Source of the DNA: Podarcis melisellensis
Lineage: Eukaryota
Length of the DNA stretch: 64,000 bases
NCBI GenBank assembly: GCA_964234715.1
Contig: OZ174281.1
Direction: 5' to 3' (one strand)
The notes beneath the pieces are model-generated. The model had not been told where the DNA came from and made no database searches. It saw nothing but the letters and a program-made list of their open reading frames with translations. Shown in pieces: positions 1 to 37,700 of this stretch (position 1 is its first letter; the number at the start of each line of letters is the position of its first letter). The position numbers and the translations under genes were made by a program.

Positions 1-1548
1 GATAGTGCCAGTCTCAGAATTAATGGAGAGGAAGGATGAGAGGGGCAGCCCCTCAGTGATGCTGCTGCGAATGGAGTAGGTGATTTGAGCATTCTGATCC
101 ACATCTGGGTCAGAGGCTTTGACCCTGAAAATGGAGGAGCCTGAAGGATTGTTCTCTGGGACATAGGCAGTATAATAGGGTTTCTCAAAGGCAGGGCGGT
201 TGTCATTGATGTCAGAGATCTGCAGTGTGATGGCTTTGTATGTGGAAAGAGGGGGGTTGCCTTTGTCTGTGGCTGTGACTGTGATATTGTACTCTGGAGT
301 TCTTTCTCTGTCCAAGGGGGCATCTGTGAGAAGCTTATAATAATTATTGGAGGCTGATACCATCTTGAATGGCAAATTGTGTTGTAAATCACAAGCAATC
401 TTCCCATTATCTCCAGAGTCTCTATCATTTACATTGATAAGGGCTACCAGGGTTCCTACTGCAGAGTCTTCAAGGATGGGGCTGGATAAAGAGGCAAGAA
501 TCACTTCTGGGGCATTGTCATTCTCATCTAGAAGTATTATTTCAACTTTACAGTGAGCCACTAATCCACCTCCATCTCTTGCTTCCACTGCCATCACATA
601 TCCTTCTGTTTCCTCAAAGTCCAGAACCTCCTTAACTATAATTGTTCCATCTTGTGAACCCAAGTGGAACTTTTGACGAGCACTTTCAGGGATGTTACTA
701 AAACTATAGTTTATCTGGGCATTTGAACCATCATCTCTATCTGTGGCTTTCACCTGGACCACCAATGACCCTTTGGGGGCATTTTCTTTCAGCTTGACCG
801 CGTATATTTTTTGAGTGAAGACTGGTGGGTTGTCATTTGCATCAATGACGGTGATCCATATTTTGGCTGTTCCAGATTTGGCAGGCTTCCCTCCATCCAG
901 TGCCGTAAGGATTAATTGGAAACTGCTTTCACTTTCCCGATCCAACTGTTTATTCAACACTAATTCTGCATATTTCTTTCCGCCTTCTATTTCTCTCACT
1001 TCCAGAATAAAGTATGGATTTGTGCTAAGGTTGTAATCCTGGAGAGAATTCACCCCAAGATCAGGATCTTCAGCTTGTCCAAGGAGAAATGTGGTGCCTT
1101 GTAAAGACAATTCACTTGTCTCCAGCTTGATATCCCCATTTACAAAAAGTGGTGCATTATCATTAATGTCTTGGATCTCTACAGTTATATGAAAAATATT
1201 CATAGGACTTCCAACCACCACTTCAAAATTGATGGAGCAGATTGCAGTTTGACCACATAATTCCTCTCTATCAATCCTTTCCCTTACATACAGATTTCCA
1301 TTTTCTGCACTGAGAGTAAAGTATTGCTTTTTACCTAGGGAAAGGATATGCAGATTGTAATTTCCTATTTCTCCATTATTCAGGCTCAGGTCTTTAGCTA
1401 GGTTTCCCACAATGGAGCCCTTTTCCATTTCCTCAGGGATGGAATAATGAATGTGCTCTGAGCCAATCTGACCACACAGAGAGAATAATAAGAGGAGAGG
1501 TACTTGCCTTCTTAGGGATCTGCTGCTATCTTTCTGTCTGCCGGCCAT
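1..1548 (-). CDS. PCDHGB: Protocadherin gammaB-like variable exon A1 (5' part: signal peptide to EC5; continues past the left window edge)
   Basis: Absent from the ORF track. Hand translation from ATG 1548 gives 516 open codons (MAGRQKDSSRSLRRQVPLLLLF...DINDNAP...LDRE...SINSETGTI). Paralogue of 23309-25711 at offset 24163. Symbol is family-level only. Confidence 0.93.
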   Translation of the reverse strand, partial: MAGRQKDSSRSLRRQVPLLLLFSLCGQIGSEHIHYSIPEEMEKGSIVGNLAKDLSLNNGEIGNYNLHILSLGKKQYFTLSAENGNLYVRERIDREELCGQTAICSINFEVVVGSPMNIFHITVEIQDINDNAPLFVNGDIKLETSELSLQGTTFLLGQAEDPDLGVNSLQDYNLSTNPYFILEVREIEGGKKYAELVLNKQLDRESESSFQLILTALDGGKPAKSGTAKIWITVIDANDNPPVFTQKIYAVKLKENAPKGSLVVQVKATDRDDGSNAQINYSFSNIPESARQKFHLGSQDGTIIVKEVLDFEETEGYVMAVEARDGGGLVAHCKVEIILLDENDNAPEVILASLSSPILEDSAVGTLVALINVNDRDSGDNGKIACDLQHNLPFKMVSASNNYYKLLTDAPLDRERTPEYNITVTATDKGNPPLSTYKAITLQISDINDNRPAFEKPYYTAYVPENNPSGSSIFRVKASDPDVDQNAQITYSIRSSITEGLPLSSFLSINSETGTI

Positions 1549-1802
1549 CCCTCTTGCAGAGAAATGTGTTTTATCCTTTCTTTCTGTGATTAGTTAAATT
1601 GAGGCGTATTAAATCCCATTCACTCTGTAGAAGTGTTCAATAAAGAATCATGAACGAAGTCAGTAGCTGCTGCTGGATTTCTATACTTTGCAGTGGCTTT
1701 GTTCCTGTGTTCTGCTGTTTCCCAGCTCTGTAGTTTGTTCATGAGCAATCAAATTGCAAAAGCATCTGGTAGTGGATTCTCCACTCCTCCATGAGAACTA
1801 TA

Positions 1803-1846
1803 TTGGCCAACAGTGACACTCTGAGTCTTAGATGGGGAACTGCAAG
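1803..1846 (-). promoter_or_regulatory. CSE (CTCF-type promoter element) of A1, CACT variant
   Basis: Minus strand TGCAGTTCCCCATCTAAGACTCAGAGTGTCACTGTTGGCCAA. The same motif recurs at similar distance before all 11 ATGs. Confidence 0.8.
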
Positions 1847-3607
1847 ACGTCTCTTCTCTTTTAAGTAAATAACATACAAGGGATTTCTTGCCATTTTCAA
1901 TCTTACGTACAATAATTCTCAGGTAGAGAATCTTTTGTGGTATGGTAAAAAAATTAGAGTTTGGTCCCTGTGTTTTACATTAGGATAAGCAACAACTCAC
2001 TTTCGTAGCAGCACATTTGGCATTGCTCATGGGGGTGCACTTCAGAGAAACTGAACTGACTGATTAGTGTCCCTGTCTGATAGTACAGTTCTGCAATCAT
2101 ATTTTTCTGACAGTTAGAAACTGTTCATCCATATAGGTACGTGTCAACATATTTAATCACAGGAAGTGGTTCTCAGACCTAATGAATTCTGAGTTTAAAA
2201 GTTATTTTCCCAAAATGTGCAATAAGGCCTTTGGAATCTTTGTGTCACACAAAATTTCCCCTCTAAAGTAACACAGTTCTACTTTCTATTGTACCAACTG
2301 TCTTGCGGGCAATCGTCTCCTCACCTACTTGCCAGTTGATGCACTTAATCAGTTATGTATGTAGCTGTGTTAGTTGACAGTGATTTGGGATACCTGGATA
2401 AATTCCTAATGTTTGGCAAGTTCTTTTTCTTCTCTTAAGGCATTACTTGACTTATGCAACTCAGTCATACAATGAGAACAGCACTAAAAGTACAATGCTT
2501 ACTCAAGATCATGCTACAGTTTTTCTTGGGAACTTGAGTCCTCTCTCCCCACCCCTCAGGCTTTCCGTAGGCTTCCCTCCCTTCCCAGATCACACCCCTC
2601 AACCCCTCACTGGCCTTTTTCATTGCCCTCTTCAGGAGCCTTACTGGCTGCAATGTGTCCTTGAACTAGGATATTGCTGCTTGCCTGGCTGGAGGAGTCA
2701 AAGATCTATAGAAGTGGAGATATTAAAACCTCTGAATTTTGCATGGTTGAAATGTGGTCTATTGTACAAAGGTAAGAGTCACATCAATAAAATATCACGG
2801 TTAGAATGCTAAATAGTGGAATGCTAGATTACGTTGTGGAATACTAAAGCAGCACTTGACAAGGCATCATCTAGCACTGCTATGGCTACCTACATGTCTC
2901 ATAAAATCACTTACTATACTCTTCCCATGATGTAGAGAGAAGGAAAATGTAGTCTAGAAGATTTGGCTCCAATGTGAACACATTATTATGAGTAGAAGAG
3001 GAAAGCATGCAATATATGTTTTAATCCCTTGCATTGTAAATTGGTACACTCAGAGGAGGACTAGAAGATCCGTGTTTATTTTCTGAACTTCCAGATCAGT
3101 ATTGTATTCTTTTGATGAAATTCTGAACAATATGGTGACAGAGTTCAAGTGTGTGTGTCTTCTTCAGAAGTAGAACCTTTACAGTGCGTGCGCATATTGC
3201 TTCGTTCAGTGAATGGGACCTTCATTTAAAAGCTTTCTCAGGATAGAGAGCTGAGCAATATAATACAGCTACTTCTACACTGGAAGAAAGATTAAACACA
3301 AAAGTAACTATTATGGAACAGCTCCTAGTCTTCACCAAAATCACAGGTGTTTGGGACGATAAATGTGCATGCTTGTGTGTGCAGGTGCACACACAAGTGC
3401 CATCCTCAACATTTCTGTGTGTGCACATTCATTTCAGACCTCCTGCATTTGGCACACCTCCTTGGCTGAATTCAGCCCCAAACTATTAGCCTCAGTAACT
3501 TGACATCTACACAAAACATAGCTATGACATAAAATTCAGACAAATCCACAGTCTCTTCATTTGCTAACAGAACTTCTGTAGATAGAATAAATTAGAAGCA
3601 CATGATT

Positions 3608-4640
3608 AACATAAAAATATAAAAAGAGCATGTTGGATCAGGCCAGTGTCCTATTTAGCTCAGAATATTATTTTCCTTGCAGTCAACTGGTTGCCTACAG
3701 GAAGCCCAAAAGTGGGGCCTGAGTGCAACAGCACTCTCCTCACTTCTGATTCCCCACAACTGGTATTCAGAGACATACTATCTCTAACTATGGAGATAGA
3801 ACCTAGACACCATTGCTAGCAGGCCATGAAATAATGTTGTACATGAATGTGTCCATTTCTCTTTTAAAACCAGGTTAGTGGGCATCACTACCTCTCATGG
3901 GAACAAACTCCACAGTTTAACTCAGTGCTGTGTGAAGAAGTATTTTCTGCTGTCTGTCCTGAATCTTCCAACATTCAGTTTCATTGGATGTGTCTTAGTT
4001 TTAGTGTTATGTGGGGAAGGGGACACTTATCCATCCACACTTTCCATACAACGCATAATTATATACACCAATACCGTGTCTTCACTTACTTGCCTTTTCT
4101 GTAAGCTGTATCTAAGTAAACTAAAAGGGTGAATGGCTCCATCCCCTTGCCAATTTGGGTTCATATTTTCCAGCTCCACCTTACCTGTTTTTAGGTAAGT
4201 TGACCAGAACTATACACAGTATTCCAAAATTTATTTTCTTTTTTTCCACAGCTGTCTCATGCTATGTCAACATCTTCATCAAACTGTTCGCTATGACCCC
4301 AAGGTCTCATTCCTGTTTAGTCCCCATAAGCATATAACTGAAACAACAGTTCTTTTAGCCCACTTTACACTTGTTCACATTAAATTGCATTTGCCATTTT
4401 ACTGCCCATTCACTCGGTATGGTTTGGAGAGATCCTTTGCGAGCTCTTTGCAACCCCTTCTTGTTTTAACCACTCTGAACTATTTGGGATTAGCAAACTT
4501 GGCTACATCATGGCTCGCTCCTAATTTTAGATCATTTATGAACAAGTTTAAAAGCTCAATACTGATTCTTGGAGGATCATGCCTTCTACATCTTTCCATA
4601 AGGAGAATCGTCACTTTATTCCTACTCTCCACTTACCAAT
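3608..4640 (-). mobile_element. Degraded CR1-type LINE 3' fragment (duplicate at ~27771-28800)
   Basis: Begins with a reversed squamate CR1-like tail (aacataaaaatataaaaagagcatgttggatcaggccagtg) followed by decayed RT-region sequence. Recognised from memory; boundaries approximate. Confidence 0.6.
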
Positions 4641-4745
4641 CTCCTCTTATTCCATAACTGCTAAAAATAGAATAAAAAATTCTGCAGAAATGTGGGGAAG
4701 GGTTTCAAAGGTGCAATACAAAGAATTCCTAACCATAAAGCTTAC

Positions 4746-7166
4746 CTCTTCATCCTTAGCCTTTTCAGACTGAAAATTGTTTCCACTGTTGCCTGTAAAA
4801 GGCACATCAGGTTTCTCACTGCCAAGAATATTGTCTACCATCTGAACATTGGGTGTCAGGAAGGCAAACTCATTCTTCCTGGTCTCAGAAGACAGACAGA
4901 GCTGGTAGGAATAGGGCAAAGTCCCATCTTCAAAGTTGGGTGGGAAGATGGCACCATTCTTGGAATGGGGAACAGGACCAAAGCACTGTAGGAACCTGGG
5001 ATGCCCTGACTGACGGAGCTTCATTGTAACGGCCAGAATCACAGTCAAGAGGAACAAGAAGGAGATCACAGCTAAGGCCAGCACCAAGTAGAACTGCAGG
5101 TCAGACTGATACTCCGAGCTGTTGGCTTGGCTCTTCATTTCCGGAAGGGCCTCCTGAAAGTTCTCAGCAAACACCAGGTTCAGAGTCATGGTGGCCGAGA
5201 GAGACGGCTGCCCGTTATCCTTCACCATAATGACCAGTCTCTGTTTCACAGCGTCTCTCTCCACAAAGGCCCTGGCGGTCCTGATCTCTCCAGTATGAGA
5301 ACCAACCGTGAAGAGTGCCGGCTCAGTGGCCTGAGTCAGGTGGTAGGAGAGCCAGGCGTTGTGTCCAGAATCTGCATCCACGGCCACCACCTTGGTGACA
5401 AGATAATCTGCCTCGGCCGAACGAGGCACCATCTCAAACAAGGCTGAGCCCTTGGCTTCTTGTGAGGGGGACAGGATACGAGGGCTGTTATCATTCCTGT
5501 CAAACACAAACACCCTGACGGTCACATTGCTGCTGAGAGGGGGAGAACCCCCATCTTGGGCCTTCACTTGCACCCGAAACTCTCTGAATTGTTCATAGTC
5601 AAAGGATCTCTGGGCATAGATGGTGCCGGTCTCTGAATTAATGGAGATATAGGAGGAGATGGGAAGCTCCTCGATGTTGCTGTTGAGTATGGAGTATGTG
5701 ATCCGTGAGTTCTGGTCCATGTCGGAATCAGAGGCTTTGATGGTGAAAATGGAGGCACCTGAAGGATTGTTTTCTGGCACGTAGATGTTGTAGGATGGCT
5801 TCTGAAATGTAGGGGCATTATCATTGATATCTGAGATCTGTAGAGAGATTGTTTTGTGTGTGGAAAGAGGTGGAGTTCCTCTGTCAGTGGCTGTGATTGT
5901 AATATTGTATGCAGGAGCTATTTCTCTGTCCAAAGGACTGTCTGTCTGGAGCTTGAAGTAATTGTTTGATGAGGGAAGAACTTTGAAAGGTAAATCATCT
6001 TGTAAGTAGCAAGTAACTTTTCCATTATCTCCACTATCTTTGTCATTTACATTGATCAGAGCAATGACAGTTCCTGGCAGAGAATCCTCAGGAACAGGGC
6101 TGGACATGGAGGCTAACGTCACTTCTGGGGCATTATCATTCCCATCAAGAACATTTATTTCAATGTTGCAGTGTGTCACTAATCCACCTCCATCCTTTGC
6201 TGCTGCTGTCATAGTATATCTTCTTGTTTCCTCAAAATCCAACATCTGCAGAAGAGAGATTATGCCATCAACTGGATCCAGGCCAAATTTCTTTTGTCCA
6301 TTCACGGGAATGTTGCTGAATTCATATCTGATCTGGGCGTTTAAACCATCATCTTTGTCAGAGGCTACAACTTGGAGCACAAAGGACCCAACAGGAGCTT
6401 CTTCATGCACACTGACCTTGTACACCTCTTGAGTGAAAACAGGTGGGTTGTCATTGGCATCTGTGACATTAATCCATATCTGGGCAGTCCCAGTTTTTCT
6501 GGGTTCACCCCCATCCAAGGCTGTAAGGATCAAGTGAAAAGAGTACTCGCTTTCCCGATCCAAAGATTTCTGCAGCACCAATTCTGCATTTTTATTTCCA
6601 TCTTCCATTTCTCTAACTTCCAAAGTGAAGTACTGATTGGAGCTTAACTGGTAATTCTGGAGGGAATTCATTCCAATGTCAGGATCTTCAGCTTTCCCAA
6701 GGAGAAAGCGGGCCCCAGGTAAAGTGGATTCAATTATATCCAAGTTGATGTTATCATTGGGAAACAGTGGTGCATTATCATTAATGTCCTGAATTGCTAT
6801 AGTTAAATGGAAGATATTTAGGGGATTTTCAACCACCACTTCAAAATTTACTACGCAAATGGGAGTTATGTCACATAGCTGCTCCCTATCTATTCTGTCA
6901 CTTACATAGAGGTTTCCATTCTCTGCATTAATACTGAAATACTGCATTTTCTTCAAAGAGACAGCATGCAGATTGCGCTTTGCAAGATCTCTTGTATTCA
7001 ATCCCAAATCCTTGGCAATATTCCCCACAATCGAACCCTTTGCCATCTCCTCAGGGATAGAATAACGAATCTGCTCTGAGGCAGCCCAGCAGGAAGGCGA
7101 CAAAAGTAAGAGAAGCAGTACTTGCCTTCTGAGCGCTCTGCCATTGTCTTTGTGCCTTCTGTCCAT
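4746..7166 (-). CDS. PCDHGB: Protocadherin gammaB-like variable exon B1 (807 codons)
   Basis: Six cadherin repeats (PE, LDRE, DxNDNxP), TM, cytoplasmic [11 protein letters not shown]. True ATG at 7166 (track starts at an upstream TTG). Donor GAG|GTAAG at 4746/4745, phase 0; unspliced ORF runs to 4647. Confidence 0.95.
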
Positions 7167-7414
7167 CTGGCTGTACAACAAATTAGCTGCTTCCTTTTGC
7201 AGATCAGATCAAAGGCCCACCAAGGTGCAGGATCACCATAAGGAAAAATAAGCTGCCTTTCTTCTTAATGTTTATAGAAAGTAGCTGAATTTTCTTTTCC
7301 TTTCTAGCAGGATTGCTCTGTCTTTGTGATGTGCTGCTTGTCCAACTTACACAGCAATGATTAAACAGTTGCTCCTTAGGAAACACTTTTCTCTTATCAG
7401 TCTGGCTGCCACAC

Positions 7415-7457
7415 TGGCCAACAGTGACACCCTGAGGCTCAGATGGAGAACTACAAG
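7415..7457 (-). promoter_or_regulatory. CSE of B1, CACT variant
   Basis: TGTAGTTCTCCATCTGAGCCTCAGGGTGTCACTGTTGGCCA, about 255 bp upstream of ATG. Confidence 0.8.
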
Positions 7458-8299
7458 GGCTTTTGTTCTCATTTACTGTAGTTGAAAATAGAACAGCAGT
7501 TTGGGTATTAGATTTTGGAATGTGAAGGAGAAACATCCCAGTGCTAAGAGCTGTTCAGCAATGGAGCTGCTTTGCTGCAGTTATTCAAGCAGAGCCTGGA
7601 CAGTCATATATTGGGGATTCTCTCTTTCCTGCAGGGCTTGGCACTGGGGTGGGAATCTCCTCTGATATGATTCTGTGTTTCTCCAAGTGCGATTTTCCTG
7701 GTATACAAGGATCTGCTTCCACAATTTATGCTCCAGCATTTCTTTTTTCCTTTCTCTTTTTGAATTACCTCTTCAGCGGCTTTTACTTTAAGGGGTTTTA
7801 CTACAGTGACTGTTGCACTGTTTTGTCTGGAAATAATTTGTACTAAAAGAGAAACTTGAATAAGCTTCATAGAATGGAAACCAGAACTACGGCACTGATA
7901 TCCCAGCATTGATGTACCACTGATCTTATTTTGCATTTCCCTGATAGAAACACTGATATCTGTGATTTCTGCTTTGATGCCAAAGATATAATCTCAAAAT
8001 GTAACAGATAATTTTACCCAACCACAGATCTCTTGCTTTTTTCAGTTTTATTAGAAGGGATATTTCCCCCAAATAATTCAGAATAAACCTATGAGTTGAC
8101 AGTGATCTCAGCTGTCCTATAGAACACAAACATAAACCAAAGTGTGTCAAACGAAAACAAAACAAACACAGATAGGGTTTTTTAGTGTTTGATTAGAAAC
8201 CAGAGCTTTTGCTCTCCTATTCTTGTTAGTTTCTTCCTTCCTCCTAAAAAACAACATTGGCTTTGAGAAAGAAAAGGTGTTAGCAGGTGACAGGAGGAT

Positions 8300-8980
8300 T
8301 CCTTGACTGTGGAATTCTGGTCACCTGGGCCTCTAGTGACAAATATTGATATAGTAGCACCCCCAGACTATGAACCTGCTCTTTCAGGAGGACCCCAGTT
8401 ATCCAGCCTCAGGGACAGCCACTCAAAGCTCCTCTGTCTTGCCAGGATTCAGAGTTTTGTTGGCCATCATTCAGGTGAACACTAAGCCTAGGCACTAGTC
8501 TAGGGCTTGCACAACCGCTTCTGATTTAGAAGTTACAGAGAAGTAGAGCTTAGCATCATCAGCATGCTGATGACACATTGCCCCAAATTTCTCAATGACT
8601 GTCTCCAGAGGCTTCATATATAGATGTCAAACAGCACTGAAGACAAAATGGTACCCTGTGGCACCCACCAGCTCAACTGCCAGCGGGCTCAAAGACAATC
8701 ACCCAAGGCTGTTTTCAGAAACCAACTCTGTTTAACCATTGTTAAACAGTGTCTCCAGTACCCATCCCATTAAGTCAGTTCAGAAAGATATAAAGGTAAT
8801 TGTGTCAAAAGCCACTGAGAAATCAGGTAAGGTTAACAGGATCATATTTCCTCTGTACTTCCCCTAGTAAAGATCACCCATCAGAGTGACAAAGGTCAAT
8901 TCAGACCCACAACCAAGGCCTGAAAGCAGATTGAAATGGGTCAAGATGATCTGTTTTGTTCAAGAGTACTTGTACTGTAT
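8300..8980 (-). mobile_element. Degraded L2-clade LINE reverse-transcriptase fragment (duplicate at ~32470-33140)
   Basis: Minus strand reads VPQGTILSSVLFDIY/MKPLETVIEKFGAMCHQHADDAKLY, matching the non-LTR RT PQG...YADD motifs, with a frameshift. Confidence 0.75.
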
Positions 8981-9658
8981 CGTCACTTCTGACATTGTGG
9001 CTCCTTGTGATATTCAAGTCAACTAGCATTTACAATGTTATCCTAAAGCAAATCTTTGAAAGATAGGTATGTATCCCTCAGTCAGCATTCCTCCTCCCCT
9101 TTCCCTACTCCATCCCAACACCAAAGCACATTAGTCCCCCCCCCACCTATATTTTATGGATAAGAACAAATCAGTGTGCCTTCTTGACATCATTTCCAGG
9201 ATTTAATGATCCCCCGTAGCATTATTTCATGGGCAATATTAGATTCACTTACTGTGCGCTACAAAGGTTTCCCCTTCTCAAACACTAGATACCATGGGTG
9301 GTATCCAGTGCTCTAGACCCAAGTAGAGCTAAATAGTATCTACATTATTCAATTCCACATATTATACAAAATCTATATGCTACACCATGTTAAACAGAGA
9401 ATTATGTAGATCCTATGGGAAGCAAATTTGCTATAAAGGACATATCAAAATTGCACCTATTGCACAACTATTTCGGAAGAAATAATACTGAACTAATCCC
9501 AGGATTTGTACCCCAAAATGAGTAAATAGTGGGGATAATTCTTGATTCATCAAAGATAGATCTATCAGTCCCGACATTCTTTGGTTTTTGTCTTTATCTG
9601 TGATTGAGTCCCCTGAACTTCAAAAAGCATGTCACATTTATACCAGCTGTAGAAATTA

Positions 9659-9899
9659 CAGTGGTACCTCAGGTTACAGATGCTTCAGGTTACATACACT
9701 TCAGGTTACAGACTCTGCTAACCCAGAAATATTACTTCGGGTTAAGAACCTTGCTTCAGGATGAGAACAGAAATCTTGCAGCGGCGGCACACGGCAGCAG
9801 GATGCCCTATTAGCTAAAGTGGTGCTTCAGGTTAAGAACAGTTTCAGGTTAGGAACAGACCTCCGGAACGAATTATGTTCTCAACCTGAGGTACCACTG
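9659..9899. mobile_element. Tc1/mariner(pogo)-type MITE
   Basis: Perfect 17-bp TIRs CAGTGGTACCTCAGGTT / AACCTGAGGTACCACTG flanked by TA duplications; internal repeats of TTCAGGTTA. Confidence 0.88.
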
Positions 9900-10262
9900 T
9901 ACGGCACAAAAGAAGACATTAGTTGGAAAAGGGAATAATTACACTTATTTGACTGACTGGATTTTAATTTATAGTCCAATGCTCTAGATTATTAATCTTG
10001 TATGATTAATTTTGTTGTACTGGTATGTCTTATGTTTAAGATTATTTAAATTTCCTTATTGTTTTGTACCATTTCCTATGTCAACTTGGGCTATGTGGAT
10101 TTTATATGGAAGTGGTAATTCACTTTGCCTTTCCTTATATTAAAAGTTTCCTTTCATTACTCTCAATACATTGCCATGGTCTGTGACTATAACAATGCAT
10201 TCATTCATGACAGGCCAAGGAGTGAGCTTAGGACTAGTGATGTTCCAGTTCAAAAAGCAGAA

Positions 10263-10435
10263 AGGTCATAGCTCAGTGGTAGAGAATCTGCTTTTCCTTC
10301 AAAAGGTTCAAAGTTCAATCCTCAGAATCTTGAGGTAGGAAAGCGAAGGTCTTCTGTTTGAAGACCTGGAGAGCTGTTGCTAGTTAGTGTGGACAGTACT
10401 GAGCTTGATGGACCAAGAGTGTCAGTAATCTCGAG
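10263..10435 (+). mobile_element. Old tRNA-derived SINE, Squam3-like (duplicate at ~34437-34610)
   Basis: A-box TAGCTCAGTGG, B-box GTTCAATCC, then body CCTGGAGAGCTGTTGCTAGTTAGTGTGGACAGTACTGAGC. Confidence 0.7.
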
Positions 10436-11106
10436 GGAACCTCCAGTTTTACAGAAGTACAAAAAAACAAAAGAAGGCAAAACCCAAACTGACCAAAGAC
10501 AGCAAAGCATGCTCAGTAGAAACACAATGCTCAGTGCCTGTTGGAGCAGAAAAATATAAAACAGGGGAGGAGGAGGAATGGGATATTATGGAAAAAGCTC
10601 GCTGAAACCAGACCCCACTTGTTACTCTGTAACATTAAAAGCACAAAAAATATTCAGTAAAGAGCTCCAAAATTTCAGCTAAAGTTCTGAAGCAAGTTTG
10701 CAAACTTACAAATTGCATACACCTCGTCCCTTACATATGCCAAGAGACCCCACAATTTGCAGCATTGTGTTGGTTCTATAGGGACATTCAGCTGAATTCA
10801 TGAAGATCAAGATTAGGAAAAGAGGGTAAAGGGAATACAAATATCCAAAAGGGAATCAGAGGGAATGAAATAATTAATTAAACTATATTACCTGTATATA
10901 TACGAAGATGAAAGAGTAAACAGATTATTATAATATACTTTCAAATATTCAATCTCAGTAAAAAAAATTGCACCAATTGTGTAGTAGCAAATACTGCTCA
11001 AAAGAAAACTCTCTGAGATGAGTGAGCTTAAAATATATTAGTACTCTATTGATATGCAGGGAATGCAGAATCTGTTCACCATGTTCTGTTGAAAAAAACA
11101 ACTCAC

Positions 11107-13521
11107 CATATCAGCTCTATCCATCTCAAAAATTAGGATATTGCCTCCATTGGCAGTCAAAGGTGTATCAGTGTTGCTTGAAATATTCTCTGCGGTTTGA
11201 ACATTGGGTGTTGGAAAGGTGAACTCCTGTACCCTGGACTCAGAAGATAAGCACAGCTGATAGGAATACGGCAATGTTCCTTCTTCATAGTTTGGTGGGA
11301 AAATGACTGTGTTGTTTGAATGGGGAACAGGAGCAAAACACTGCAGGAATTTGGGATTCCCTGATCGCCGAATCTTCATGAGAATGGCCAGAATCACTGT
11401 CAGGAGGAATAAGAAGGAGATCAAAGCTAAGGCCAGCACCAAGAAGAACTGTAGATCCGATTGATACTCGGAGTCACTGGGCTGGTGGCTAATTTCTGGA
11501 AGTGCCTCCTGGAAGTTCTCAGCAAACACCAGGTTGAGACTCACGGTAGCAGATAGTGGTGGCTGCCCATTATCCTTGACTAAGATGATGAGCTTCTGCT
11601 TCACAGCATCTCTTTCCAGAAAAGCCCGTGAGGTCCTGATCTCCCCAGTATGGGAACCAATTGAGAACAGCCCAGGTTCTGTTGCCTGGAGCAGATAGTA
11701 GGAGAGCCAAGCGTTGTGTCCAGAGTCAGCATCCACAGCCACCACCTTGGTCACCAGATAACCCTCCTCTGCTGAGCGAGGCACCATCTCAAACAAGGAG
11801 GAGCCCTCTACTCCTTGAGAAGGATAAAGAATCTGAGGGCTTTGGTCATTCTGGTCCAGAATACACAGTCTCACGGTGGCATTGCTGCTGAGGCGGGGGG
11901 AGCCTCCATCTTCGGCCCTCACCTCCACTTGAAACTCCCTGACTTGCTCATAGTCAAAGGAGCGCTGAGCATAGATAGTGCCAGTCTCAGAATTAATGGA
12001 GAGGAAGGACGAGAGAGGCAGCCCCTCAGTGATGCTGCTGCGAATGGAGTAGGTGATTTGAGCATTCTGGTCCACATCTGGGTCGGAGGCTTTGACCCTA
12101 AAAATGGAGGAGCCTGAAGGATTGTTCTCTGGGACATAGGCAGTATAATAGGGTTTCTCAAAGGCAGGGCAGTTGTCATTGATGTCAGAGATCTGCAGTG
12201 TGATGGTTTTGTATGTGGAAAGAGGGGGGTTGCCTTTGTCTGTGGCTGTGACTGTGATATTGTACTCTGGAGTTCTTTCTCTGTCCAAGGGGGCGTCTGT
12301 GAGAAGCTTATAATAATTATTGGAGGCTGATACCATTTTGAATGGCAAAGTGTGTTGTATGTCACAAGCAATCTTCCCATTATCTCCAGAGTCTCTATCA
12401 TTTACATTGATAAGGGCTACCAGGGTTCCTACTGCAGAGTCTTCAGGGATGGGGCTGGATAAAGAGGCAAGAATCACTTCTGGAGCATTGTCATTCTCAT
12501 CTAGGAGTGTTATTTCAACATTGCAGTGAGCGGCTAATCCTCCCCCATCTCTTGCTTCCACTGCAATTGCATATTCTTCTATTTCCTCAAAGTCCAGAGC
12601 CTCTTTAAGTGTTATTGTCCCATCTTGTGGATCCAGGTAGAATTTCTGGCGAGCACTTTCAGGGTTGTTACTAAAACTATAGTTTATCTGGGCATTTGAA
12701 CCATCATCTCTATCTGTGGCTTTCACCTGGACCACTGAAGACCCTTTGGGGGTATTTTCTTTCAGCTTGACTGTGTATACTTTTTGCGTGAAGACTGGTG
12801 GGTTGTCATTTGCATCAATGACAGTGATCCATATTTTGGCTGTTCCAGTTTTGGCAGGCTTCCCTCCATCCAGCGCCGTAAGGATTAATTGGAAACTGCC
12901 TTCACTTTCCCGATCCAACTGTTTATTCAATACTAATTCTGCATATTTCTTTCCATCCTTTCTTTCTCTCACTTCCAGAATAAAGTATGGATTTGTGCTA
13001 AGGTTGTAATCCTGGAGAGAATTCACCCCAAGATCAGGATCTTCAGCTTGTCCAAGGAGAAATGTGGTGCCTTTTAAAGACAATTCACTTGTCTCCAGCT
13101 TGATATCCCCGTTTACAAAATGTGGTGCATGATCATTTATGTCTTGGATCTCTACAGTTATATGAAAAATATTCATAGGGCTGTCAAGCACCACTTCAAA
13201 ATTGATGGAGCAGAATGCAGTTTGACCACATAATTCCTCTCTATCAATCCTCTCCCTTACATACAAATTCCCATTTTCTGCACTGAGAGTAAAGTATTGC
13301 TTTTTACCTAGGGAAAGGATATGCATATTGCCATTTCCTATTTCTCTGTTATTCAATCTCAGGTCTTTGGCTAGGTTTCCCACAATGGATCCCTTTTCCA
13401 TTTCTTCAGGGATGGAATAATGAATGTGCTCTGAGGCAATCTGACCACACAGAGAGAATAGTAAGAGGAGAGGTACTTGCCTTCTTACTGATCTGCTGTT
13501 TTTCTTCTGCCTATCTTCCAT
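11107..13521 (-). CDS. PCDHGB: Protocadherin gammaB-like variable exon C1 (805 codons)
   Basis: Six EC repeats, TM, GTLPYSY. Donor ATG|GTGAGT at 11107/11106, phase 0; unspliced ORF to 11038. Confidence 0.95.
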
Positions 13522-13800
13522 TCCTCTTGCAGGGATATGTGCTTTATCCTTGTTTTCTGTGATCCGTTGAGCTGATGAGGAGTTTCACATTCCCATTAGG
13601 ATGCAGAAGAGCTCAATGAGGGATGATAAACAAGGCTACTGGTTGCTGTTGAATTTCTGTACTTTGCAGCGGTTTTTGTTTCTCAGCAAAACACTTTGGA
13701 AGTCCCTGTGTTCTGCTGTTTCCCAGCTCTGTGTGACTGAACAATCACACTGCAGAAGCAGCAAATCACTGGATTTTCAGCTCCACTGTGAGAACTATGT

Positions 13801-15981: not shown

Positions 15982-15984
15982 TGT

Positions 15985-16050: not shown

Positions 16051-16052
<2 letters not shown>

Positions 16053-28908: not shown

Positions 28909-31329
28909 CTCTTCATCCTTAGCCTTTTCAGACAGAAAATCGTTTCCACTGTTGCCTGTAAATGGCGCAGCAGGTTTTTCACTGCCAATAATATTGTCTA
29001 CCATCTGAACACTGGGTGTCAGGAAGGCAAACTCATTCTTCCTGGTCTCAGAAGACAGACACAGCTGGTAGGAATAGGGCAAAGTCCCATCTTCAAAGTT
29101 GGGTGGGAAGATGGCACCATTCTTGGAATGGGGAACAGGGCCAAAGCACTGTAGGAACCTGGGATGCCCTGATTGACGGAGCTTCATTGTAACGGCCAGA
29201 ATCACAGTCAAGAGGAACAAGAAGGAGATCACAGCTAAGGCCAGCACCAAGTAGAACTGCAGGTCAGACTGATACTCCGAGCTGTTGGCTTGGCTCTTCA
29301 TTTCCGGAAGGGCCTCCTGAAAGTTCTCAGCAAACACCAGGTTCAGAGTCATGGTGGCCGAGAGAGACGGCTGCCCGTTATCCTTCACCATAATGACCAG
29401 TCTCTGTTTCACAGCATCTTTCTCCACAAAGGCCCTGGCTGTCCTGATCTCTCCAGTATGAGAACCAACCGTGAAGAGTGCCGGCTCAGTGGCCTGAGTC
29501 AGGTGGTAGGAGAGCCAGGCGTTGTGTCCAGAATCTGCATCCACGGCCACCACCTTGGTGACAAGATAATCTGCCTCGGCCGAACGAGGCACCATCTCAA
29601 ACAAGGCTGAGCCCTTGGCTTCTTGTGAGGGGGACAGGATACGAGGGCTGTTATCATTCCTGTCAAGAACAAACACCCTGACGCTCACATTGCTGCTGAG
29701 AGGGGGAGAACCCCCATCTTGGGCCTTCACTTGCACCCGAAACTCTCTGAATTGTTCATAGTCAAAGGATCTCTGGGCATAGATGGTGCCGGTCTCTGAA
29801 TTAATGGAGATATAGGAGGAGATGGGAAGCTCCTCGATGTTGCTGTTGAGTATGGAGTATGTGATCCGTGAGTTCTGGTCCATGTCGGGATCAGAGGCTT
29901 TGATGGTGAAAATGGAGGCACCTGAAGGATTGTTTTCTGGCACATAGATGTTGTAGGATGGCTTCTGAAAGGTAGGGGCATTATCATTGATATCTGAGAT
30001 CTGGAGAGAGATTGTTTTGTGTGTGGAAAGAGGCGGAGTTCCTCTGTCAGTGGCTGTGATTGTAATATTATATGCAGGAACTATTTCTCTGTCCAATGGA
30101 CTGTCTGTCTGGAGTTTGAAGTAATTATTAGATGAGGGAAGAATTTTGAAGGGTAAACCATCTTGTAAGTAGCAAGTAACCTTTCCATTATCACCACTAT
30201 CTTTGTCATTTACATTGATCAGAGCAATGACAGTTCCTGGCAGAGAATCCTCAGGAACTGGGCTGAACATGGAGGCTAACGTCACTTCTGGGGCATTATC
30301 ATTCCCATCAAGAACATTTATTTCAATGTTGCAGTGTGTCACCAATCCACCTCCATCCTTTGCTGCTGCTGTCATAGTATATCTTCTTGTTTCCTCAAAA
30401 TCCAACATCTGCAGAAGGGAGATTATGCCATCAACTGGATCCAGGCCAAATTTCTTTTGTCCATTCACTGGAATGTTGCTGAATTCATATCTGATCTGGG
30501 CGTTTAAACCATCATCTTTGTCAGAGGCTACAACTTGGAGCACAAAGGACCCAACAGGAGCTTCTTCATGCACACTGACCTTGTACACCTCTTGAGTGAA
30601 GACTGGTGGGTTGTCATTGGCATCTGTGACATTAATCCATATCTGGGCAGTCCCCGTTTTTCTGGGTTCCCCCCCATCCAAGGCTGTAAGGGACAAGTGA
30701 AGAGCGTGCTCACTTTCCCGATCCAAAGATTTCTGCAACACCAGTTCTGCATTTTTACTTCCATCTTCCATTTCTCTAACTTCCAAAGTGAAGTACCGAT
30801 TGGTGCTCAACTGGTAATTCTGGAGGGAATTCATCCCAATGTCAGGATCTTCAGCTTTCCCAAGGAGAAATCGTGCGCCTGGTACAGTAAGTTCACTTGT
30901 CTCCAAGTTGATGTTGCCATTGGGAAACAGTGGTGCATTATCATTAATGTCCTGAATTGCTATAGTTAAATGGAAGATATTGAGGGGATTTTCAACTACC
31001 ACTTCAAAATTTACTACGCAAATGGGAGTTATGTCACATAGCTGCTCCCTATCTATTCTGTCACTTACATAGAGGTTTCCATTCTCTGCATTAATACTGA
31101 AAAACTGCATTTTGTTCACAAAGACAGCATGCAGATTGCGCTTTGCAAGATCTCTTGTATTCAGTCCCAAATCCTTGGCCAGATTCCCCACAATCGAACC
31201 CTTTGCCATCTCTTCAGGGATAGAATAACGAATCTGCTCTGAGGCAGCCCAGCAGGAAGGCGACAAAAGTAAGAGAAGCAGTACTTGCCTTCTGAGTGCT
31301 CTGCCATTGTCGTCGTGTCTTCTGTCCAT
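28909..31329 (-). CDS. PCDHGB: Protocadherin gammaB-like variable exon B2 (807 codons)
   Basis: Duplicate of B1 (offset 24163). Donor GAG|GTAAG at 28909/28908; unspliced ORF to 28810. Confidence 0.95.
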
Positions 31330-34073: not shown

Positions 34074-35279
34074 TACGGCACAAAAGAAGACATTAGTTGG
34101 AAAAGGGAATAATTACACTTATTTGACTGACTGGATTTTAATTTATAGTCCAATGCTCTAGATTATTAATCTTGTATGATTAATTTTGTTGTACTGGTAT
34201 GTCTTATGTTTAAGATTATTTAAATTTCCTTATTGTTTTGTACCATTTCCTATGTCAACTTGGGCTATGTGGATTTTATATGGAAGTGGTAATTCACTTT
34301 GCCTTTCCTTATATTAAAAGTTTCCTTTCATTACTCTCAATACATTGCCATGGTCTGTGACTATAACAATGCATTCATTCATGACAGGCCAAGGAGTGAG
34401 CTTAGGACTAGTGATGTTCCAGTTCAAAAAGCAGAAAGGTCATAGCTCAGTGGTAGAGAATCTGCTTTTCCTTCAAAAGGTTCAAAGTTCAATCCTCAGA
34501 ATCTTGAGGTAGGAAAGCGAAGGTCTTCTGTTTGAAGACCTGGAGAGCTGTTGCTAGTTAGTGTGGACAGTACTGAGCTTGATGGACCAAGAGGGTCAGT
34601 AGTCTCGAGGGAACCTCCAGTTTTACAGAAGTACAAAAAAAAAAGAAGGCAAAACCCAAACTGACCAAAGACAGCAAAGCATGCTCAGTAGAAACACAAT
34701 GCTCAGTGCCTGTTGGAGCAGAAAAATATAAAACAGGGGAGGAGAAGGAATGGGATATTATGGAAAAAGCTCGCTGAAACCAGACCCCACTTGTTACTCT
34801 GTAACATTAAAAGCACAAAAAATATTCAGTAAAGACCTCCAAAATTTCAGCTAAAGTTCTGAAGCAAGTTTGCAAACTTACAAATTGCATACACCTCGTC
34901 CCTTACATATGCCAAGAGACCCCACCATTTGCAGCATTGTGTTGGTTCTATAGGGACATTCAGCTGAATTCATGAAGATCAAGATTAGGAAAAGAGGGTA
35001 AAGGGAATACAAATATCCAAAAGGGAATCAGAGGGAATGAAATAATTAATTAAACTATATTACCTGTATATATACGAAGATGAAAGAGTAAACAGATTAT
35101 TATAATATACTTTCAAATATTCAATCTCAGTAAAAAAAAATTGCACCAATTGTGTAGCAGCAAATACTGCTCAAAAGAAAACTCTCTGAGATGAGTGAGC
35201 TTAAAATATATTAGTACTCTATTGATATGCAGGGAATGCAGAATCTGTTCACCATGTTCTGTTGAAAAAAACAACTCAC

Positions 35280-37700
35280 CATATCAGCTCTATCCATCTC
35301 AGAAATTAGGATATTGCCTCCATTGGCAGTCAAAGGTGCATCAGACTGAGTGTTGCATGAAACATTCCCTGCAGTTTGAAGATTGGGTGTTGGAAAGGTG
35401 AACTCCTGTACCCTGGACTCAGAAGATAAGCACAGCTGATAGGAATACGGCAATGTTCCTTCTTCATAGTTTGGTGGGAAAATGACTGTGTTGTTTGAAT
35501 GGGGAACAGGAGCAAAACACTGCAGGAATTTGGGGTTTCCTGATCGCCGAATCTTCATGAGAATGGCCAGAATCACTGTCAGGAGGAATAAGAAGGAGAT
35601 CAAAGCTAAGGCCAGCACCAAGAAGAATTGTAGATCCGATTGATACTCAGAGTCACTGGGCTGGTGGCTAATTTCTGGAAGTGCCTCCTGGAAGTTCTCA
35701 GCAAACACCAGGTTGAGACTCACGGTAGCAGATAGTGGTAGCTGCCCATTATCCTTGACTAAGATGATGAGCTTCTGCTTCACGGCATCTCTTTCCAGAA
35801 AAGCCCGTGAGGTCCTGATCTCCCCAGTATGGGAACCAATTGAGAACAGCCCAGGTTCTGTTGCCTGGAGCAGATAGTAGGAGAGCCAAGCGTTGTGTCC
35901 AGAGTCAGCATCTACAGCCACCACCTTGGTCACCAGATAACCCTCCTCTGCTGAGCGAGGCACCATCTCAAACAAGGAGGAGCCCTCTACTCCTTGAGAA
36001 GGGTAAAGAATCTGAGGGCTTTGGTCATTCTGATCCAGAATACACAGTCTCACGGTGGCATTGCTGCTGAGGCGGGGGGAGCCTCCATCTTCGGCCCTCA
36101 CCTCCACTTGAAACTCCCTGACTTGCTCATAGTCAAAGGAGCGCTGAGCATAGATAGTGCCAGTCTCAGAATTAATGGAGAGGAAGGATGAGAGAGGCAG
36201 CCCCTCAGTGATGCTGTTGCGAATGGAGTAGGTGATTTGAGCATTCTGGTCCACATCTGGGTCGGAGGCTCTGACCCTGAAAATGGAGGAGCCTGAAGGA
36301 TTGTTCTCTGGGACATAGGCAGTATAATAGGGTTTCTCAAAGGCAGGGCAGTTGTCATTGATGTCAGAGATCTGCAGTGTGATGGTTTTGTATGTGGAAA
36401 GAGGGGGGTTGCCTTTGTCTGTGGCTGTGACTGTGATATTGTACTCTGGAGTTCTTTCTCTGTCCAAGGGGGCGTCTGTAAGAAGCTTATAATAATTATT
36501 GGAGGCTGATACCATCTTGAATGGCAAATTGTGTTGTAAATCACAAGCAATCTTCCCATTGTCTCCAGAGTCTCTATCATTTACATTGATAAGGGCTACC
36601 AGGGTTCCTACTGCAGAGTCTTCAGGGATTGGGCTGGATAAAGACGCCAGAATCACTTCTGGGGCATTGTCATTCTCATCTAGGAGTGAAATTTCAACTT
36701 TACAGTGAGCCACTAATCCACCTCCATCTCTTGCTTCTACTGCCATCACATATCCTTCTGTTTCCTCAAAGTCCAGAGCCTCCTTAAGTGTTATTGTCCC
36801 TTCTTGTGGATCCAAGTAGAATTTCTGGTGAGCAATTTCAGGGATGTTACTAAAATTATAGTTGATGTGAGCATAAGAACCGTCATCTCTATCTGTGGCT
36901 TTCACCTGGACCACTGAAGACCCTTTGGGGGCATTTTCTTTCAGCTTGACTGAGTATACTTTTTGAGTGAAGACTGGTGGGTTGTCATTTGCATCAATGA
37001 CGGTGATCCATATTTTGGCTGTTCCAGTTTTGGCAGGCTTCCCTCCATCCAGCGCCGTTAGGGTTAATTGGAAATTGCTTTCACTTTCCCGATCCAACTG
37101 TTTATTCAATACTAATTCTGCATATTTCTTTCCATCTTCTATTTCTCTCACTTCCAGAATAAAATACTGATTTGAGCTAAGGTGGTAATTCTGGAGAGAA
37201 TTCACCCCAAGATCAGGATCTTCAGCTTGTCCAAGGAGAAATGTGGTGCCTTTTAAAGAGGATTCACTTATCTCCAGCTTTATATCCCCTTTTACAAAAT
37301 ATGGTGCATTATCGTTAATGTCTTGGATCTCTACAGTTATATGAAAAATATTCATAGGGCTGTCAAGCACCACTTCAAAATTGATGGAGCAGATTGCAGT
37401 TTGACCACATAATTCCTCTCTATCAATCCTCTCCCTTACATACAAATTCCCATTTTCTGCACTGAGAGTGAAATATTGTTTTTTACCTAGGGAAAGGATA
37501 TGCAGATTGCCATTTCCTATTTCTCCATTATTCAATCTCAGGTCTTTGGCTAGGTTTCCTACAATGGATCCCTTTTCCATTTCTTCAGGGATGGAATAAT
37601 GAATGTGCTCTGAGACAATCTGACCACACAGAGAGAATAATAGGAGGAGAGGTACTTGCCTTCTGAGGGATCTGCTGTTTTCCTTCTGCCTATCTTCCAT
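35280..37700 (-). CDS. PCDHGB: Protocadherin gammaB-like variable exon C2 (807 codons)
   Basis: Duplicate of C1. Donor ATG|GTGAGT at 35280/35279; unspliced ORF to 35211. Confidence 0.95.

Follow-up and report, generated by a model that had tools for sequence, protein, structure and literature searches.

Regional gene conversion among the variable exons of clustered protocadherins has been described in fugu (Yu et al., 2007; PMC1852091), in Xenopus (Etlioglu et al., 2016; PMC4978886), and, as cited in this literature, by Noonan et al. (2004; Genome Res 14:354). The locus analyzed here resembles these systems in that tandem single-exon paralogues exchange sequence and the half running from EC5-EC6 to the cytoplasmic end is near-identical within a subgroup. 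As in fugu, where the signature was put to the same use, GC3 is raised in the homogenized half (~62% in EC5-6 vs ~38% in EC1-3). Those papers present conversion as a homogenizer from which EC2-EC3 are largely exempt. In contrast, a dated young duplicate is found here in which conversion appears to make the twins differ, and EC2 itself contains tracts and a swapped motif; the non-coding spacer provides an internal clock that is absent from those analyses.

In the anole cluster, gene conversion was reported to be infrequent, with a dS ratio across ectodomains of 2.25 for gamma-b (Jiang et al., 2009; PMC2764143). The present cluster is likewise that of a squamate with a large gamma-b type expansion through lineage-specific tandem duplication. 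Unlike those of the anole, however, its lacertid B-type exons are homogenized in EC6 (dS 0.000-0.025), whereas in these pairs dS climbs to 0.2-0.7 in EC2-EC3. In mouse, tandem duplications of Pcdh clusters, both natural and engineered ones, were used to study how duplicated exons are expressed (Kaneko et al., 2014; PMC4151104). Similarly, the segmental duplication described here, known from sequence alone, would add variable exons to the stochastic-choice repertoire.

In the snake-venom PLA2 genes, exons are more diverged than introns, dN equals or exceeds dS, and selection has been invoked. The lizard locus is similar in that recent tandem duplicates have diverged more in their coding parts than in the non-coding DNA beside them, but dN/dS is ~0.23 and the alleles appear to be borrowed from paralogues. 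Diversifying gene conversion also occurs in immune families, such as the MHC and the chicken Ig V genes with their pseudogene donors, and in chicken Ig it can be somatic and programmed. Here, short patches from paralogous donors would likewise give new mosaic combinations in recognition domains, but the exchange is an evolutionary process in the germline, and nothing points to a dedicated mechanism.

The window, a 64,000-nucleotide stretch of DNA from the lacertid lizard Podarcis melisellensis, holds a portion of its array of protocadherin-gamma variable exons (Table 1). All 11 long open reading frames in the ORF listing are on the minus strand, and a spacing of 5-7 kb in a single orientation (n = 11) is the clustered protocadherin gamma arrangement. 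The exons also fit the layout of this family, in which one large exon codes for six cadherin repeats preceded by a signal peptide and followed by a transmembrane segment and a short cytoplasmic portion. Residues 31-672 of e5 matched EC1-6 of mouse Pcdh gamma-B4 (6e6b) with E = 7.9e-231, and the closest database proteins carry the name "protocadherin gamma-B5-like" (Podarcis raffonei, 96%). The splice donor GAG/GTAAGC follows codon 807 in four of four B exons, the A-exon donor is ATG/GTGAGT, and the P. raffonei isoform P0012 changes to constant-region sequence precisely at the B donor position; the constant exons themselves lie beyond the window. The ~320 bp preceding each ATG are kept within the subfamily (self-BLAST), in keeping with one promoter per exon. 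The 3' end and 3' flank of e4 are orthologous to those of the single P. raffonei exon (L001:3386), and the e3/e7 pair is a mosaic in which mismatches range from 0/150 to 31/150. High-copy repeats are carried by the spacer between e1 and e0, near 3900-4100 and 4290-4490.

Table 1. Features of the protocadherin-gamma window, in positions of the whole stretch
Feature	Position	Strand	Remarks
e0 (A1), gamma A-type variable exon, 5' 516 codons	1..1548	(-)	ATG at 1548, truncated by window edge; young twin of e4
Promoter-proximal block of e0	1549..1850	(-)	Paralogous to other A-type exon promoters; twin divergence raised
Unique spacer e1/e0	1851..4717	.	Sole other copy in window is the twin 26014-28880; ~0.5% divergence
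e1 (B1), complete gamma B-type variable exon	4746..7166	(-)	807 codons, donor GAG/GTAAGC; young twin of e5; E = 8e-231 to mouse Pcdh gamma-B4 EC1-6
Promoter-proximal block of e1	7167..7488	(-)	Paralogous to remaining B-type promoters
Unique spacer e2/e1	7489..11012	.	~0.7% twin divergence; 26 mismatches, hand-counted; 7489-9904 measured in pooled test
e2, A-type exon	11107..13521	(-)	3' part (to ~12337) young twin of e6; 5' part older paralogue of e6
Spacer e3/e2	13522..16124	.	5.5% from 37701-40259, many indels; older duplication layer
N run (gap or mask)	16125..16253	.	Intronic, ~210 bp 3' of e3 donor (16464)
e3, B-type exon	16464..18884	(-)	Older twin of e7; putative partner for e1 and e5 in conversion across EC4-EC6
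e4 (A2), A-type exon	23309..25711	(-)	Body is young twin of e0
e5 (B2), B-type exon	28909..31329	(-)	Young twin of e1
e6, A-type exon	35280..37700	(-)	3' part young twin of e2; 5' part older
e7, B-type exon	40572..42992	(-)	Older twin of e3; has e1's derived EC2 states
EC2 motif cassette in e0, ETSEL form	1100..1129	(-)	Derived nucleotides identical to those of e2
EC2 tract of e1	6441..6834	(-)	~30 derived sites in e1 vs ~6 in e5; ~20 e1 sites in the e7 or e3 state
DIIES/ETSEL motif inside e1 EC2 tract	6708-6754	(-)	Lies within 6441..6834

Positions 1-14524 match 24164-38812 at a constant offset of 24163 (self-BLAST), and the young twins within this match are 1-12337 and 24164-36500. The duplication is not uniformly young: twin divergence has a change point at 12337, below which it is 0.97% and above which it is 6.9%. 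Aligned to the matching stretch of the other copy, 12337-16124 shows 5.5-6.9% divergence and about 280 gapped columns. In global alignments of the twins, the intergenic region 1549-4646 contained 17 mismatches in 3098 bp (0.55%) and zero indels, within the ~15-20 differences over ~3 kb estimated in the initial annotation, and 7167-11037 contained 31 in 3864 (0.80%). The coding parts of A1 and A2 (1-1548 vs 24164-25711) differed at 63 nucleotides (4.07%) and at 28 amino acids, exactly the number first counted. The B1 and B2 ORFs differed at 85 nucleotides (3.37%) and 35 amino acids, 33 of which fall inside the true exon ending after codon 807, as estimated before.

When the sequence was regrouped by the presence or absence of another paralogue inside the window, the paralogous blocks (exons plus ~320 bp of promoter) differed at 156 of 4621 sites (3.38%) and the unique flanks at 34 of 5278 (0.64%), with an odds ratio of 5.4 (Fisher P = 3e-24). 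The earlier observation that exons are more diverged than their own flanks was hence borne out, while the strict coding limit placed on it was not, as the two non-coding promoter-proximal blocks (pooled, ~320 bp each) also diverged by 1.6% vs 0.64% in the flanks (P = 0.02). Five twin differences lie within the first 150 bp of the block of e0. The excess also covers the largely homogenized EC5-to-cytoplasmic part; it tracks the extent of paralogy and not coding status.

The dS of the twin exons was 0.087-0.106 overall (A1/A2: dN 0.024, dS 0.106), with a dN/dS of 0.23 in both pairs, and the flank divergence was 0.006. Flanks as diverged as exon synonymous sites, together with a lack of clustering, had been named as grounds against the initial reading. 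Instead, exon synonymous divergence was 15-35 times that of the flanks, and the derived alleles of the B pair run along one twin (28 runs vs 40.8 expected, P = 0.002); the same test gave no significant clustering in the A pair (P = 0.11). Since dS itself is raised to this degree, the reversed coding/non-coding conservation is a mutational-input effect and not a protein-level one. The amino-acid differences of the B pair cluster as first described, with 13 in EC2, none in EC3 (dN = 0), and 22 in EC1-4 in total, and those of the A pair include 10 in EC2 and nine in EC3. Nevertheless, dN/dS was at most 0.35 in every EC domain of both pairs, such as 0.060/0.209 (0.29) in B EC2, 0.042/0.125 in A EC2, and 0.038/0.178 in A EC3. 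Positive diversifying selection on EC2/EC3 was not supported, as dN/dS is never above 1 and the excess is mainly synonymous.

Gene conversion, the other process initially proposed, fared better. Derived alleles were polarized with the P. raffonei orthologue (L001) as the outgroup and compared with the neighboring exons of the window and the P. raffonei paralogues. Another compared paralogue carried the derived allele in 37/82 cases in the B pair (45%) and 33/63 in the A pair (52%), where chance would give 6.0% for B (binomial P = 1e-23) and 2.2% for A (binomial P = 1e-37). The other 45/82 and 30/63 had no carrier among the readable exons, and unsampled donors would account for this rough half. 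Permutation tests identified fragments shared between non-twins, namely e1-e3 at 5808-5880 (P = 0.0005), e5-e3 (P = 0.003), and e0-e2 (P = 0.0045). Exon e5 is identical to e3 (0/150 mismatches) where e1-e5 show 3/150, and EC6 dS is 0.000 for e1/e3 vs 0.025 for e1/e5. Among the A exons, a non-twin pair equals or is closer than the twins in several 150-bp windows, and across the full exon dS is just marginally lower for the twins than for non-twins (0.106 vs 0.12-0.15). The exon excess is thus best explained, as these comparisons support, by gene conversion from neighboring paralogous exons.

The donor matches found are all short, namely the e0 cassette, equal to that of e2, and the 150 bp of e5 and e3. 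The nucleotides of this ETSEL cassette are common to e0 and e2 alone, against their own twins and orthologues, whereas the IIES form is present in e4, the twin of e0, as GIIES and in the P. raffonei orthologue of e0 as EIIES. The dimorphic EC2 motif (ETSEL or EIIES) is exchanged between the twins in both pairs. A donor identical across the e1 EC2 tract was found neither in the window, nor in L001, nor among 120 database proteins; e1 and e7 still differ at 13-20% of the sites of the tract, which suggests that the donor is unsampled or that conversion was patchy. A GC-biased outcome was not significant among the twin differences, for which W>S : S>W was 59:67 in the paralogous blocks against 9:19 in the flanks (P = 0.21).

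The comparison with P. raffonei separated the exons from their flanks (L001 three-way). In the flanks, the twins are 0.5-0.9% from each other and 2.75-4.1% from P. raffonei, while in the exons they are 3.4-4.1% from each other and 3.3-3.9% from P. raffonei. The exon trees, (e1,(e5,PrB1)) at 94/94 and (e0,(e4,PrA0)) at 88/93, contradict the flanks, where the twins are sisters. They also contradict positional orthology, since P. raffonei has its one copy downstream of e3, in the position of copy 1. Only six derived sites are shared by the twins against the outgroup, and 23 are private to P. raffonei; the exon history therefore looks star-like, as an older exon divergence would also make it.

Taken together, we consider it probable that a recent 13-kb copy arose and that its exons were diversified by repeated short-patch exchange with sister exons. 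About 13 kb, comprising the 3' part of e2, a spacer, e1, a spacer, and most of e0, would have been copied into another A-type exon, presumably through ectopic recombination for which A-exon homology served as the anchor at either end, giving e6(3')-e5-e4. As a single event would span both spacers, the enclosed exons must have started identical. The unique spacers would since have gained point mutations only (~0.6%). The exons and the ~320 bp promoter blocks, which alone have further homologues in the cluster, would have undergone repeated interlocus gene conversion, swapping short patches with sister exons. Several pre-existing, mostly synonymous differences would arrive together with each patch, and the outcome would be 3.4-4.1% twin divergence under ordinary purifying selection. 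The same process may homogenize the EC5-to-cytoplasmic half of all B-type exons while yielding mosaics in EC1-EC4, including swaps of the dimorphic EC2 motif.

A different history, in which the duplication is old, the exon dS of ~0.1 is its true age, the spacers were later homogenized twin-to-twin, and selection for distinct isoforms purged homogenization of the exons, seems unlikely. The star-like exons, with twin divergence about equal to orthologue divergence and few twin-shared derived sites, would fit it, as would the grouping of e5 and e4 with P. raffonei exons and the older layer (5.5-6.9%) beyond 12337. It is also favored by a Logan contig of the related organism B that is identical to e1 across 6509-6702, so that this species is not alone in having an EC2 tract of the e1 type. 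However, at least two spacers (3-3.5 kb) would have to be homogenized separately, since one event across both would reset the enclosed exon, and each event would have to halt at the exon/promoter borders. The raised, mostly synonymous differences of the EC5-to-cytoplasmic part, which is uniform in function, and of the promoter blocks would be left unexplained, as would alleles common to one non-twin neighbor only (the e0-e2 cassette and e5-e3). Moreover, neither copy has flanks closer to P. raffonei than the other, and both have the same number of derived flank sites. The P. raffonei exons group with copy 2 even though the single P. raffonei copy is positionally orthologous to copy 1.

It is similarly improbable that the twins are an assembly artefact, either haplotypes of one locus placed in tandem or an exon consensus made chimeric by paralogue reads. 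Heterozygosity can reach the 0.5-0.6% by which the flanks differ, and the N run separates the two young copies. In addition, every flank contig of both organism-A runs carries the copy 2 letters at the twin-different sites, so the private flank letters of copy 1 were not reproduced. Near-identical 3' regions also led to misassembly of the Pcdh cluster in the fugu draft genome (PMC1852091). Against an artefact, homology is collinear through the N run (16124 with 40259, 16254 with 40362), both N runs are ~128 letters and may be masks instead of contig breaks, and the sequence is unbroken at e3 and e7 and through e4-e5-e6, which are upstream of e3. The run is intronic, and none of the findings rests on it. 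An e1/e0-like unit is found downstream of e3 in P. raffonei as well, as independent evidence, and synteny with that species supports the positions of both copies. In addition, the divergence and gapped columns of 12337-16124 are too large for alleles, and the e1-specific haplotype is recovered by Logan de Bruijn contigs of a second individual (X1), which show 0-1 differences across 6112-6363, 6678-7090, 7061-7400, and 4386-4801, and in part by contigs of another species. That new exon substitutions arose after duplication by positive selection or by exon-targeted point hypermutation, such as CpG deamination, is very improbable, despite the concentration of amino-acid differences in the reported specificity domains, EC2 (B) and EC2-EC3 (A). 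Besides the low dN/dS and the mainly synonymous excess, about half of the derived alleles pre-exist in paralogues, against the 2-6% expected for new mutations. The CpG share of differences is 14-18% in exons, not above the 19-21% of the flanks, and ts/tv is lower in the paralogous blocks, not higher (1.5 vs 3.4, P = 0.07).

Conversion in protocadherin clusters is already known; what is new under the conversion reading is that it is seen diversifying fresh duplicates, EC2 included. With 22 amino-acid differences in EC1-4, a changed binding specificity of the B pair is plausible, and the adhesion specificity of the duplicated isoforms may have been altered.

Eleven open reading frames (ORFs) of about 800 codons, designated e0 to e10 in window order, were identified in the protocadherin-gamma variable-exon array, all on the minus strand and with two subfamilies, A and B, in alternation. 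Across EC1-EC6, the B-type exon e5 aligned with mouse protocadherin gamma-B4 (6e6b; E=7.9e-231), and the closest database proteins were lacertid gamma-B-like sequences, with an identity of 96% to Podarcis raffonei and, for other exons, of 92-95% to Zootoca vivipara. These matches point to a lacertid near Podarcis, with no sign of human DNA. B-type exons end at the splice donor GAG/GTAAGC after codon 807 and A-type exons at ATG/GTGAGT; in the P. raffonei isoform P0012, the constant region begins exactly at the B-type donor point. The exons e8 and e10, which are 81% identical to each other, had Zootoca gamma-A6-like proteins as top matches, and e9 shares 94% identity with a Zootoca gamma-B6 isoform.

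Variable exons and spacers of the window, with differences between the young twin copies and the motif at the start of EC2
Feature	Position	Strand	Remark	Twin mismatches	EC2-start motif
e0	1-1548	-	partial		ETSEL
e1	4746-7166	-			DIIES
e2	11107-13521	-			
e3	16464-18884	-			
e4	23309-25711	-			GIIES
e5	28909-31329	-			ETSEL
e6	35280-37700	-			
e7	40572-42992	-			
e8	46620-49121	-	third subfamily		
e9	53251-55755	-	separate lineage		
e10	57848-60262	-	third subfamily		
Spacer	1549-4646			17/3098 (0.55%)	
Spacer	7167-11037			31/3864 (0.80%)	
e0/e4 coding (A pair)			28 amino acid differences	63/1548 (4.07%)	
e1/e5 ORF (B pair)			35 amino acid differences (33 in true exon)	85/2520 (3.37%)	
P. raffonei B orthologue					ETSEL
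P. raffonei A orthologue					EIIES

Self-BLAST and global alignment matched positions 1-14524 to 24164-38812, the offset being 24163 throughout. The initial annotation had described near-identical spacers beside far more diverged exons, and the alignment agreed with high significance. Its domain counts for the B pair, with EC2 at 13 amino acid differences and EC3 at none, were reproduced by a recount; the A pair carries 10 differences in EC2 and nine in EC3. When the sequence was regrouped by the presence or absence of another homologue in the window, the exons with about 320 bp upstream differed between twins at 156/4621 positions (3.38%) and the unique spacer at 34/5278 (0.64%), an odds ratio of 5.4 (P = 3e-24). 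The proposed reversal of coding and non-coding conservation was thus retained in part: the exon excess is present, but the non-coding promoter-proximal blocks alone, at 1.6%, also exceed the unique spacer (P=0.02), so that the excess tracks paralogy rather than coding status.

Twin differences were polarised with the P. raffonei orthologues. The twin flanks were sisters, with a mutual distance of 0.5-0.9% against 2.75-4.1% to the outgroup and equal counts of derived sites, whereas the mutual distance of the twin exons equals their distance to the outgroup. Among the derived alleles, 37/82 in the B pair and 33/63 in the A pair matched another compared paralogue (neighbouring window exons and P. 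raffonei paralogues), where chance predicts 6.0% and 2.2%, respectively (P ~1e-23 and 1e-37). Derived alleles also tended to run on one twin, forming 28 runs in the B pair against 40.8 expected (P=0.002), with P=0.11 in the A pair. A GENECONV-like permutation identified significant shared fragments between non-twins. Some non-twin exons were also closer to each other than the twins: e5 and e3 have 0/150 mismatches where e1 and e5 have 3/150, and the EC6 dS is 0.000 for e1/e3 versus 0.025 for the twins e1/e5. Among the A exons, several 150-bp windows had a non-twin pair whose distance was no greater than that of the twins, and across the entire exon the twins were nearer only by a small margin (dS 0.106 vs 0.12-0.15).

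Exon trees placed each copy 2 exon with the P. raffonei orthologue (PrB1 or PrA0): (e1,(e5,PrB1)) had a support of 94/94 and (e0,(e4,PrA0)) of 88/93, the topology of the latter being subject to the caveat that more columns entered the A-exon tree than intended, since e0 is partial. Positional orthology contradicts these trees, as the only P. raffonei unit is located downstream of e3, like copy 1 (1-12337) and not copy 2 (24164-36500); the flank relationships contradict them as well. GC content at third positions (GC3) is about 62% in EC5-6 and 38% in EC1-3, and raised GC3 was the signature used for conversion in fugu by Yu et al. (PMC1852091). Within every exon GC3 steps sharply, from 36-42% in EC1-3 to 59-64% in EC5-6, and CpG observed/expected ratios are low everywhere (exons, 0.19-0.31; spacers, 0.17-0.18). 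The exon gene conversion suggested in the initial annotation was supported by paralogue-shared alleles, runs, tree conflict, and shared fragments, and interlocus conversion among paralogous exons and promoters, following a recent 13-kb copying, is the best explanation and a likely one.

Positive selection, which had been offered as an alternative or additional cause, was rejected from dN/dS values, both for whole exons and for single domains. The ratio was 0.23 in both twin pairs and at most 0.35 in every domain, among them EC2 in the B pair (0.060/0.209) and EC2-EC3 in the A pair; selection on point mutations as the driver of exon divergence is accordingly highly improbable. Synonymous divergence reached 0.087-0.106, which is 15-20 times the spacer divergence. 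CpG or transcription-linked hypermutation was likewise rejected, as the CpG share of differences was no higher in exons (14-18%) than in spacers (19-21%). The transition/transversion ratio was 3.4 in spacers vs 1.5 in exons (P=0.07), and a lower exon ratio is expected from imported old differences, not from fresh mutations. An older duplication with later-homogenised spacers would also leave exons more diverged than spacers, and appears improbable. One copying event across both spacers must have reset the exon that they enclose, which places the exon differences after that event.

An assembly artefact is about as improbable as such an older duplication, if not slightly more so. A false duplication would fit the position of the young copies on opposite sides of a run of Ns (16125-16253), but collinearity is kept across this run, the neighbouring 5.5-6.9% layer contains indels, e7 through e3 lie in uninterrupted sequence, and synteny with P. 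raffonei is retained. The run lies in the intron, on the 3' side of the e3 donor at a distance of about 210 bp, its borders are collinear with the other copy (16124 with 40259 and 16254 with 40362), and the claims made here are independent of it. A second run (46142-46269) follows the end of the e8 ORF in the 3' direction, at about 350 bp. Both are 128-129 letters long, which may indicate masks rather than contig breaks.

Logan contigs were compared with positions 1549-7400 for two sequencing runs of organism A, presumed to be the same species. Over 4386-4801, 6112-6363, 6678-7090, and 7061-7400, those of X1, an independent individual, departed from e1-specific sequence at 0-1 positions, and a contig of the related organism B showed no difference from e1 across 6509-6702. 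Contigs covering 4850-5630 were 4-10x deeper than their neighbours, which fits a 3' half common to many exons; the stretch compared contains no single-copy control for counting copies by depth. In both organism-A runs, every flank contig had the letter of copy 2 at twin-different sites (1549-4406 and 7061-7400; ~13 independent bubbles), and the private flank letters of copy 1 occurred in 0 contigs. As Logan contigs drop minority paths, this is no evidence against those letters, nor does it lend them independent confirmation. The pattern may stem from such dropping, from another copy elsewhere, or from differences that are individual-specific or due to the consensus. The 95% likeness threshold excluded e5-type contigs of the 10%-diverged tract, making their absence uninformative. 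The exact e1 and e5 ORF products had no record in public assemblies.

The duplication comprises two layers. A change-point analysis located a jump in divergence from 0.97% to 6.9% at ~12337, inside e2/e6, beyond which the e3-e2 spacer is 5.5% diverged with many indels. The pair e3/e7 is a mosaic, ranging from 0/150 to 31/150 mismatches. The two exons are identical over the last ~330 bp (16254 to ~16590, including the intronic ORF tail), yet their dS climbs to 0.88 in EC4 and to 0.37-0.40 in EC2-EC3. A donor absent from the window must have passed a large foreign segment to one of the two. In the P. raffonei locus stretch L001 (23.5 kb around the protein P0025), a single copy was found, matching both young copies equally (94.4% and 94.7%). 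At the e4 position, L001 carries one A exon (L001:3386) with a promoter and 5' part of the e2/e6 type (5/194 mismatches to e2) and a 3' end and flank of the e4 type (2-3 mismatches per 200). The P. raffonei e3 orthologue (P0025, 783 aa, L001:10001-12315) ends about 35 codons short of the splice donor and is joined at 12315 straight to the equivalent of window position 9904, with ~6.7 kb, including the e2 orthologue, absent at this junction.

From these relationships we infer an ancestral order e7-A°-e3-e2-e1-e0, in which A° would be an A exon that received a copy of ~13 kb (the 3' part of e2, a spacer, e1, a spacer, and most of e0). The copying would have occurred by ectopic recombination, with homology between A exons as its anchor on either side, turning one exon into three (e6, e5, and e4), and a further loss in P. 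raffonei would have removed e2 together with the e3 3' end. The 3' junction of the copy is masked within the homogenised A-exon part and lies partly beyond the window.

Repeats were also observed in the array. A dispersed ~340-bp repeat, probably a SINE-like element, has four copies (15191-15529, 21493-21841, 22250-22589, and 39337-39671) with a mutual identity of 83-87%. Two of them lie 760 bp apart within the e4-e3 spacer, and those at the twin positions 15191 and 39337 are 87% identical, in keeping with the older layer of duplication. High-copy repeats are present at 3900-4100 and 4290-4490, inside the otherwise unique e1-e0 spacer, where contig depth was very high in all four runs (up to ~23,000 in the run X15 vs ~129 beside); the second of these repeats contains a cluster of twin differences (4289-4418).

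At the first strand of EC2 (1100-1129, 6708-6754, and the matching sites of e2-e7), two forms occur, ETSEL-like and EI[ILSV]ES-like. Each recurs in both the A and the B subfamily, as well as among database gamma proteins of squamates. Among 130 squamate matches, ~60 were EI.E[ST]-like and ~30 ETSE.-like. Copy 1 switched the form in both e0 and e1, and the e0 cassette is identical in nucleotides to that of e2, from which e2's own twin and P. raffonei counterpart differ. Since both classes recur across squamates, the twins differ by a reshuffle of pre-existing variants. In e1, the tract 6441-6834 has ~30 derived sites, ~20 of which equal the e7 or e3 state, while e1 and e7 still differ by 13-20% there. 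No better donor for the EC2 of e1 was found in L001, and none among 120 database proteins was closer than the orthologue P0012 (90.8%); either the donor lay outside the sampled exons or conversion was patchy. It is possible, though doubtful, that short-tract germline conversion generates new adhesion codes by shuffling a few pre-existing EC2 segments between neighbouring gamma exons, possibly across A and B, which would give a fresh duplicate a distinct homophilic specificity much faster than point mutation. The dimorphic ETSEL/EIIES strand would be the clearest case of such shuffling.

Clustered protocadherins serve as self-recognition barcodes of neurons, and new isoform specificities after exon duplication are usually ascribed to slow point mutation under diversifying selection. 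Conversion in these clusters is established, mainly homogenising EC4-6 and the cytoplasmic part and largely exempting EC2-3 (PMC1852091 and PMC4978886, both citing Noonan et al. 2004). In contrast to the little conversion reported for a lizard in the anole study (PMC2764143), the lacertid locus here demonstrated strong 3' homogenisation. It also differs from published clusters in that, measured against a spacer clock, conversion makes fresh duplicates differ, EC2 included. As the mechanism is well known in protocadherins and other gene families, the finding is incremental rather than surprising; the locus is a variant of a known process, and the diversified fresh duplicates, EC2 included, are its new part.

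The unique spacer dates the duplication to about one fifth of the divergence from P. raffonei, making the locus an internally dated example in which the change brought in by patch exchange with sister exons, 13 amino acid replacements in the EC2 of one pair among it, exceeded that from point mutation several-fold. In clusters of this kind, orthology calls, exon trees, and dates based on dS can mislead. Conversion, usually viewed here as homogenising only, also produces mosaics on this reading, and, if true, the shuffling of EC2 would affect a domain held by the literature to be shielded from conversion.
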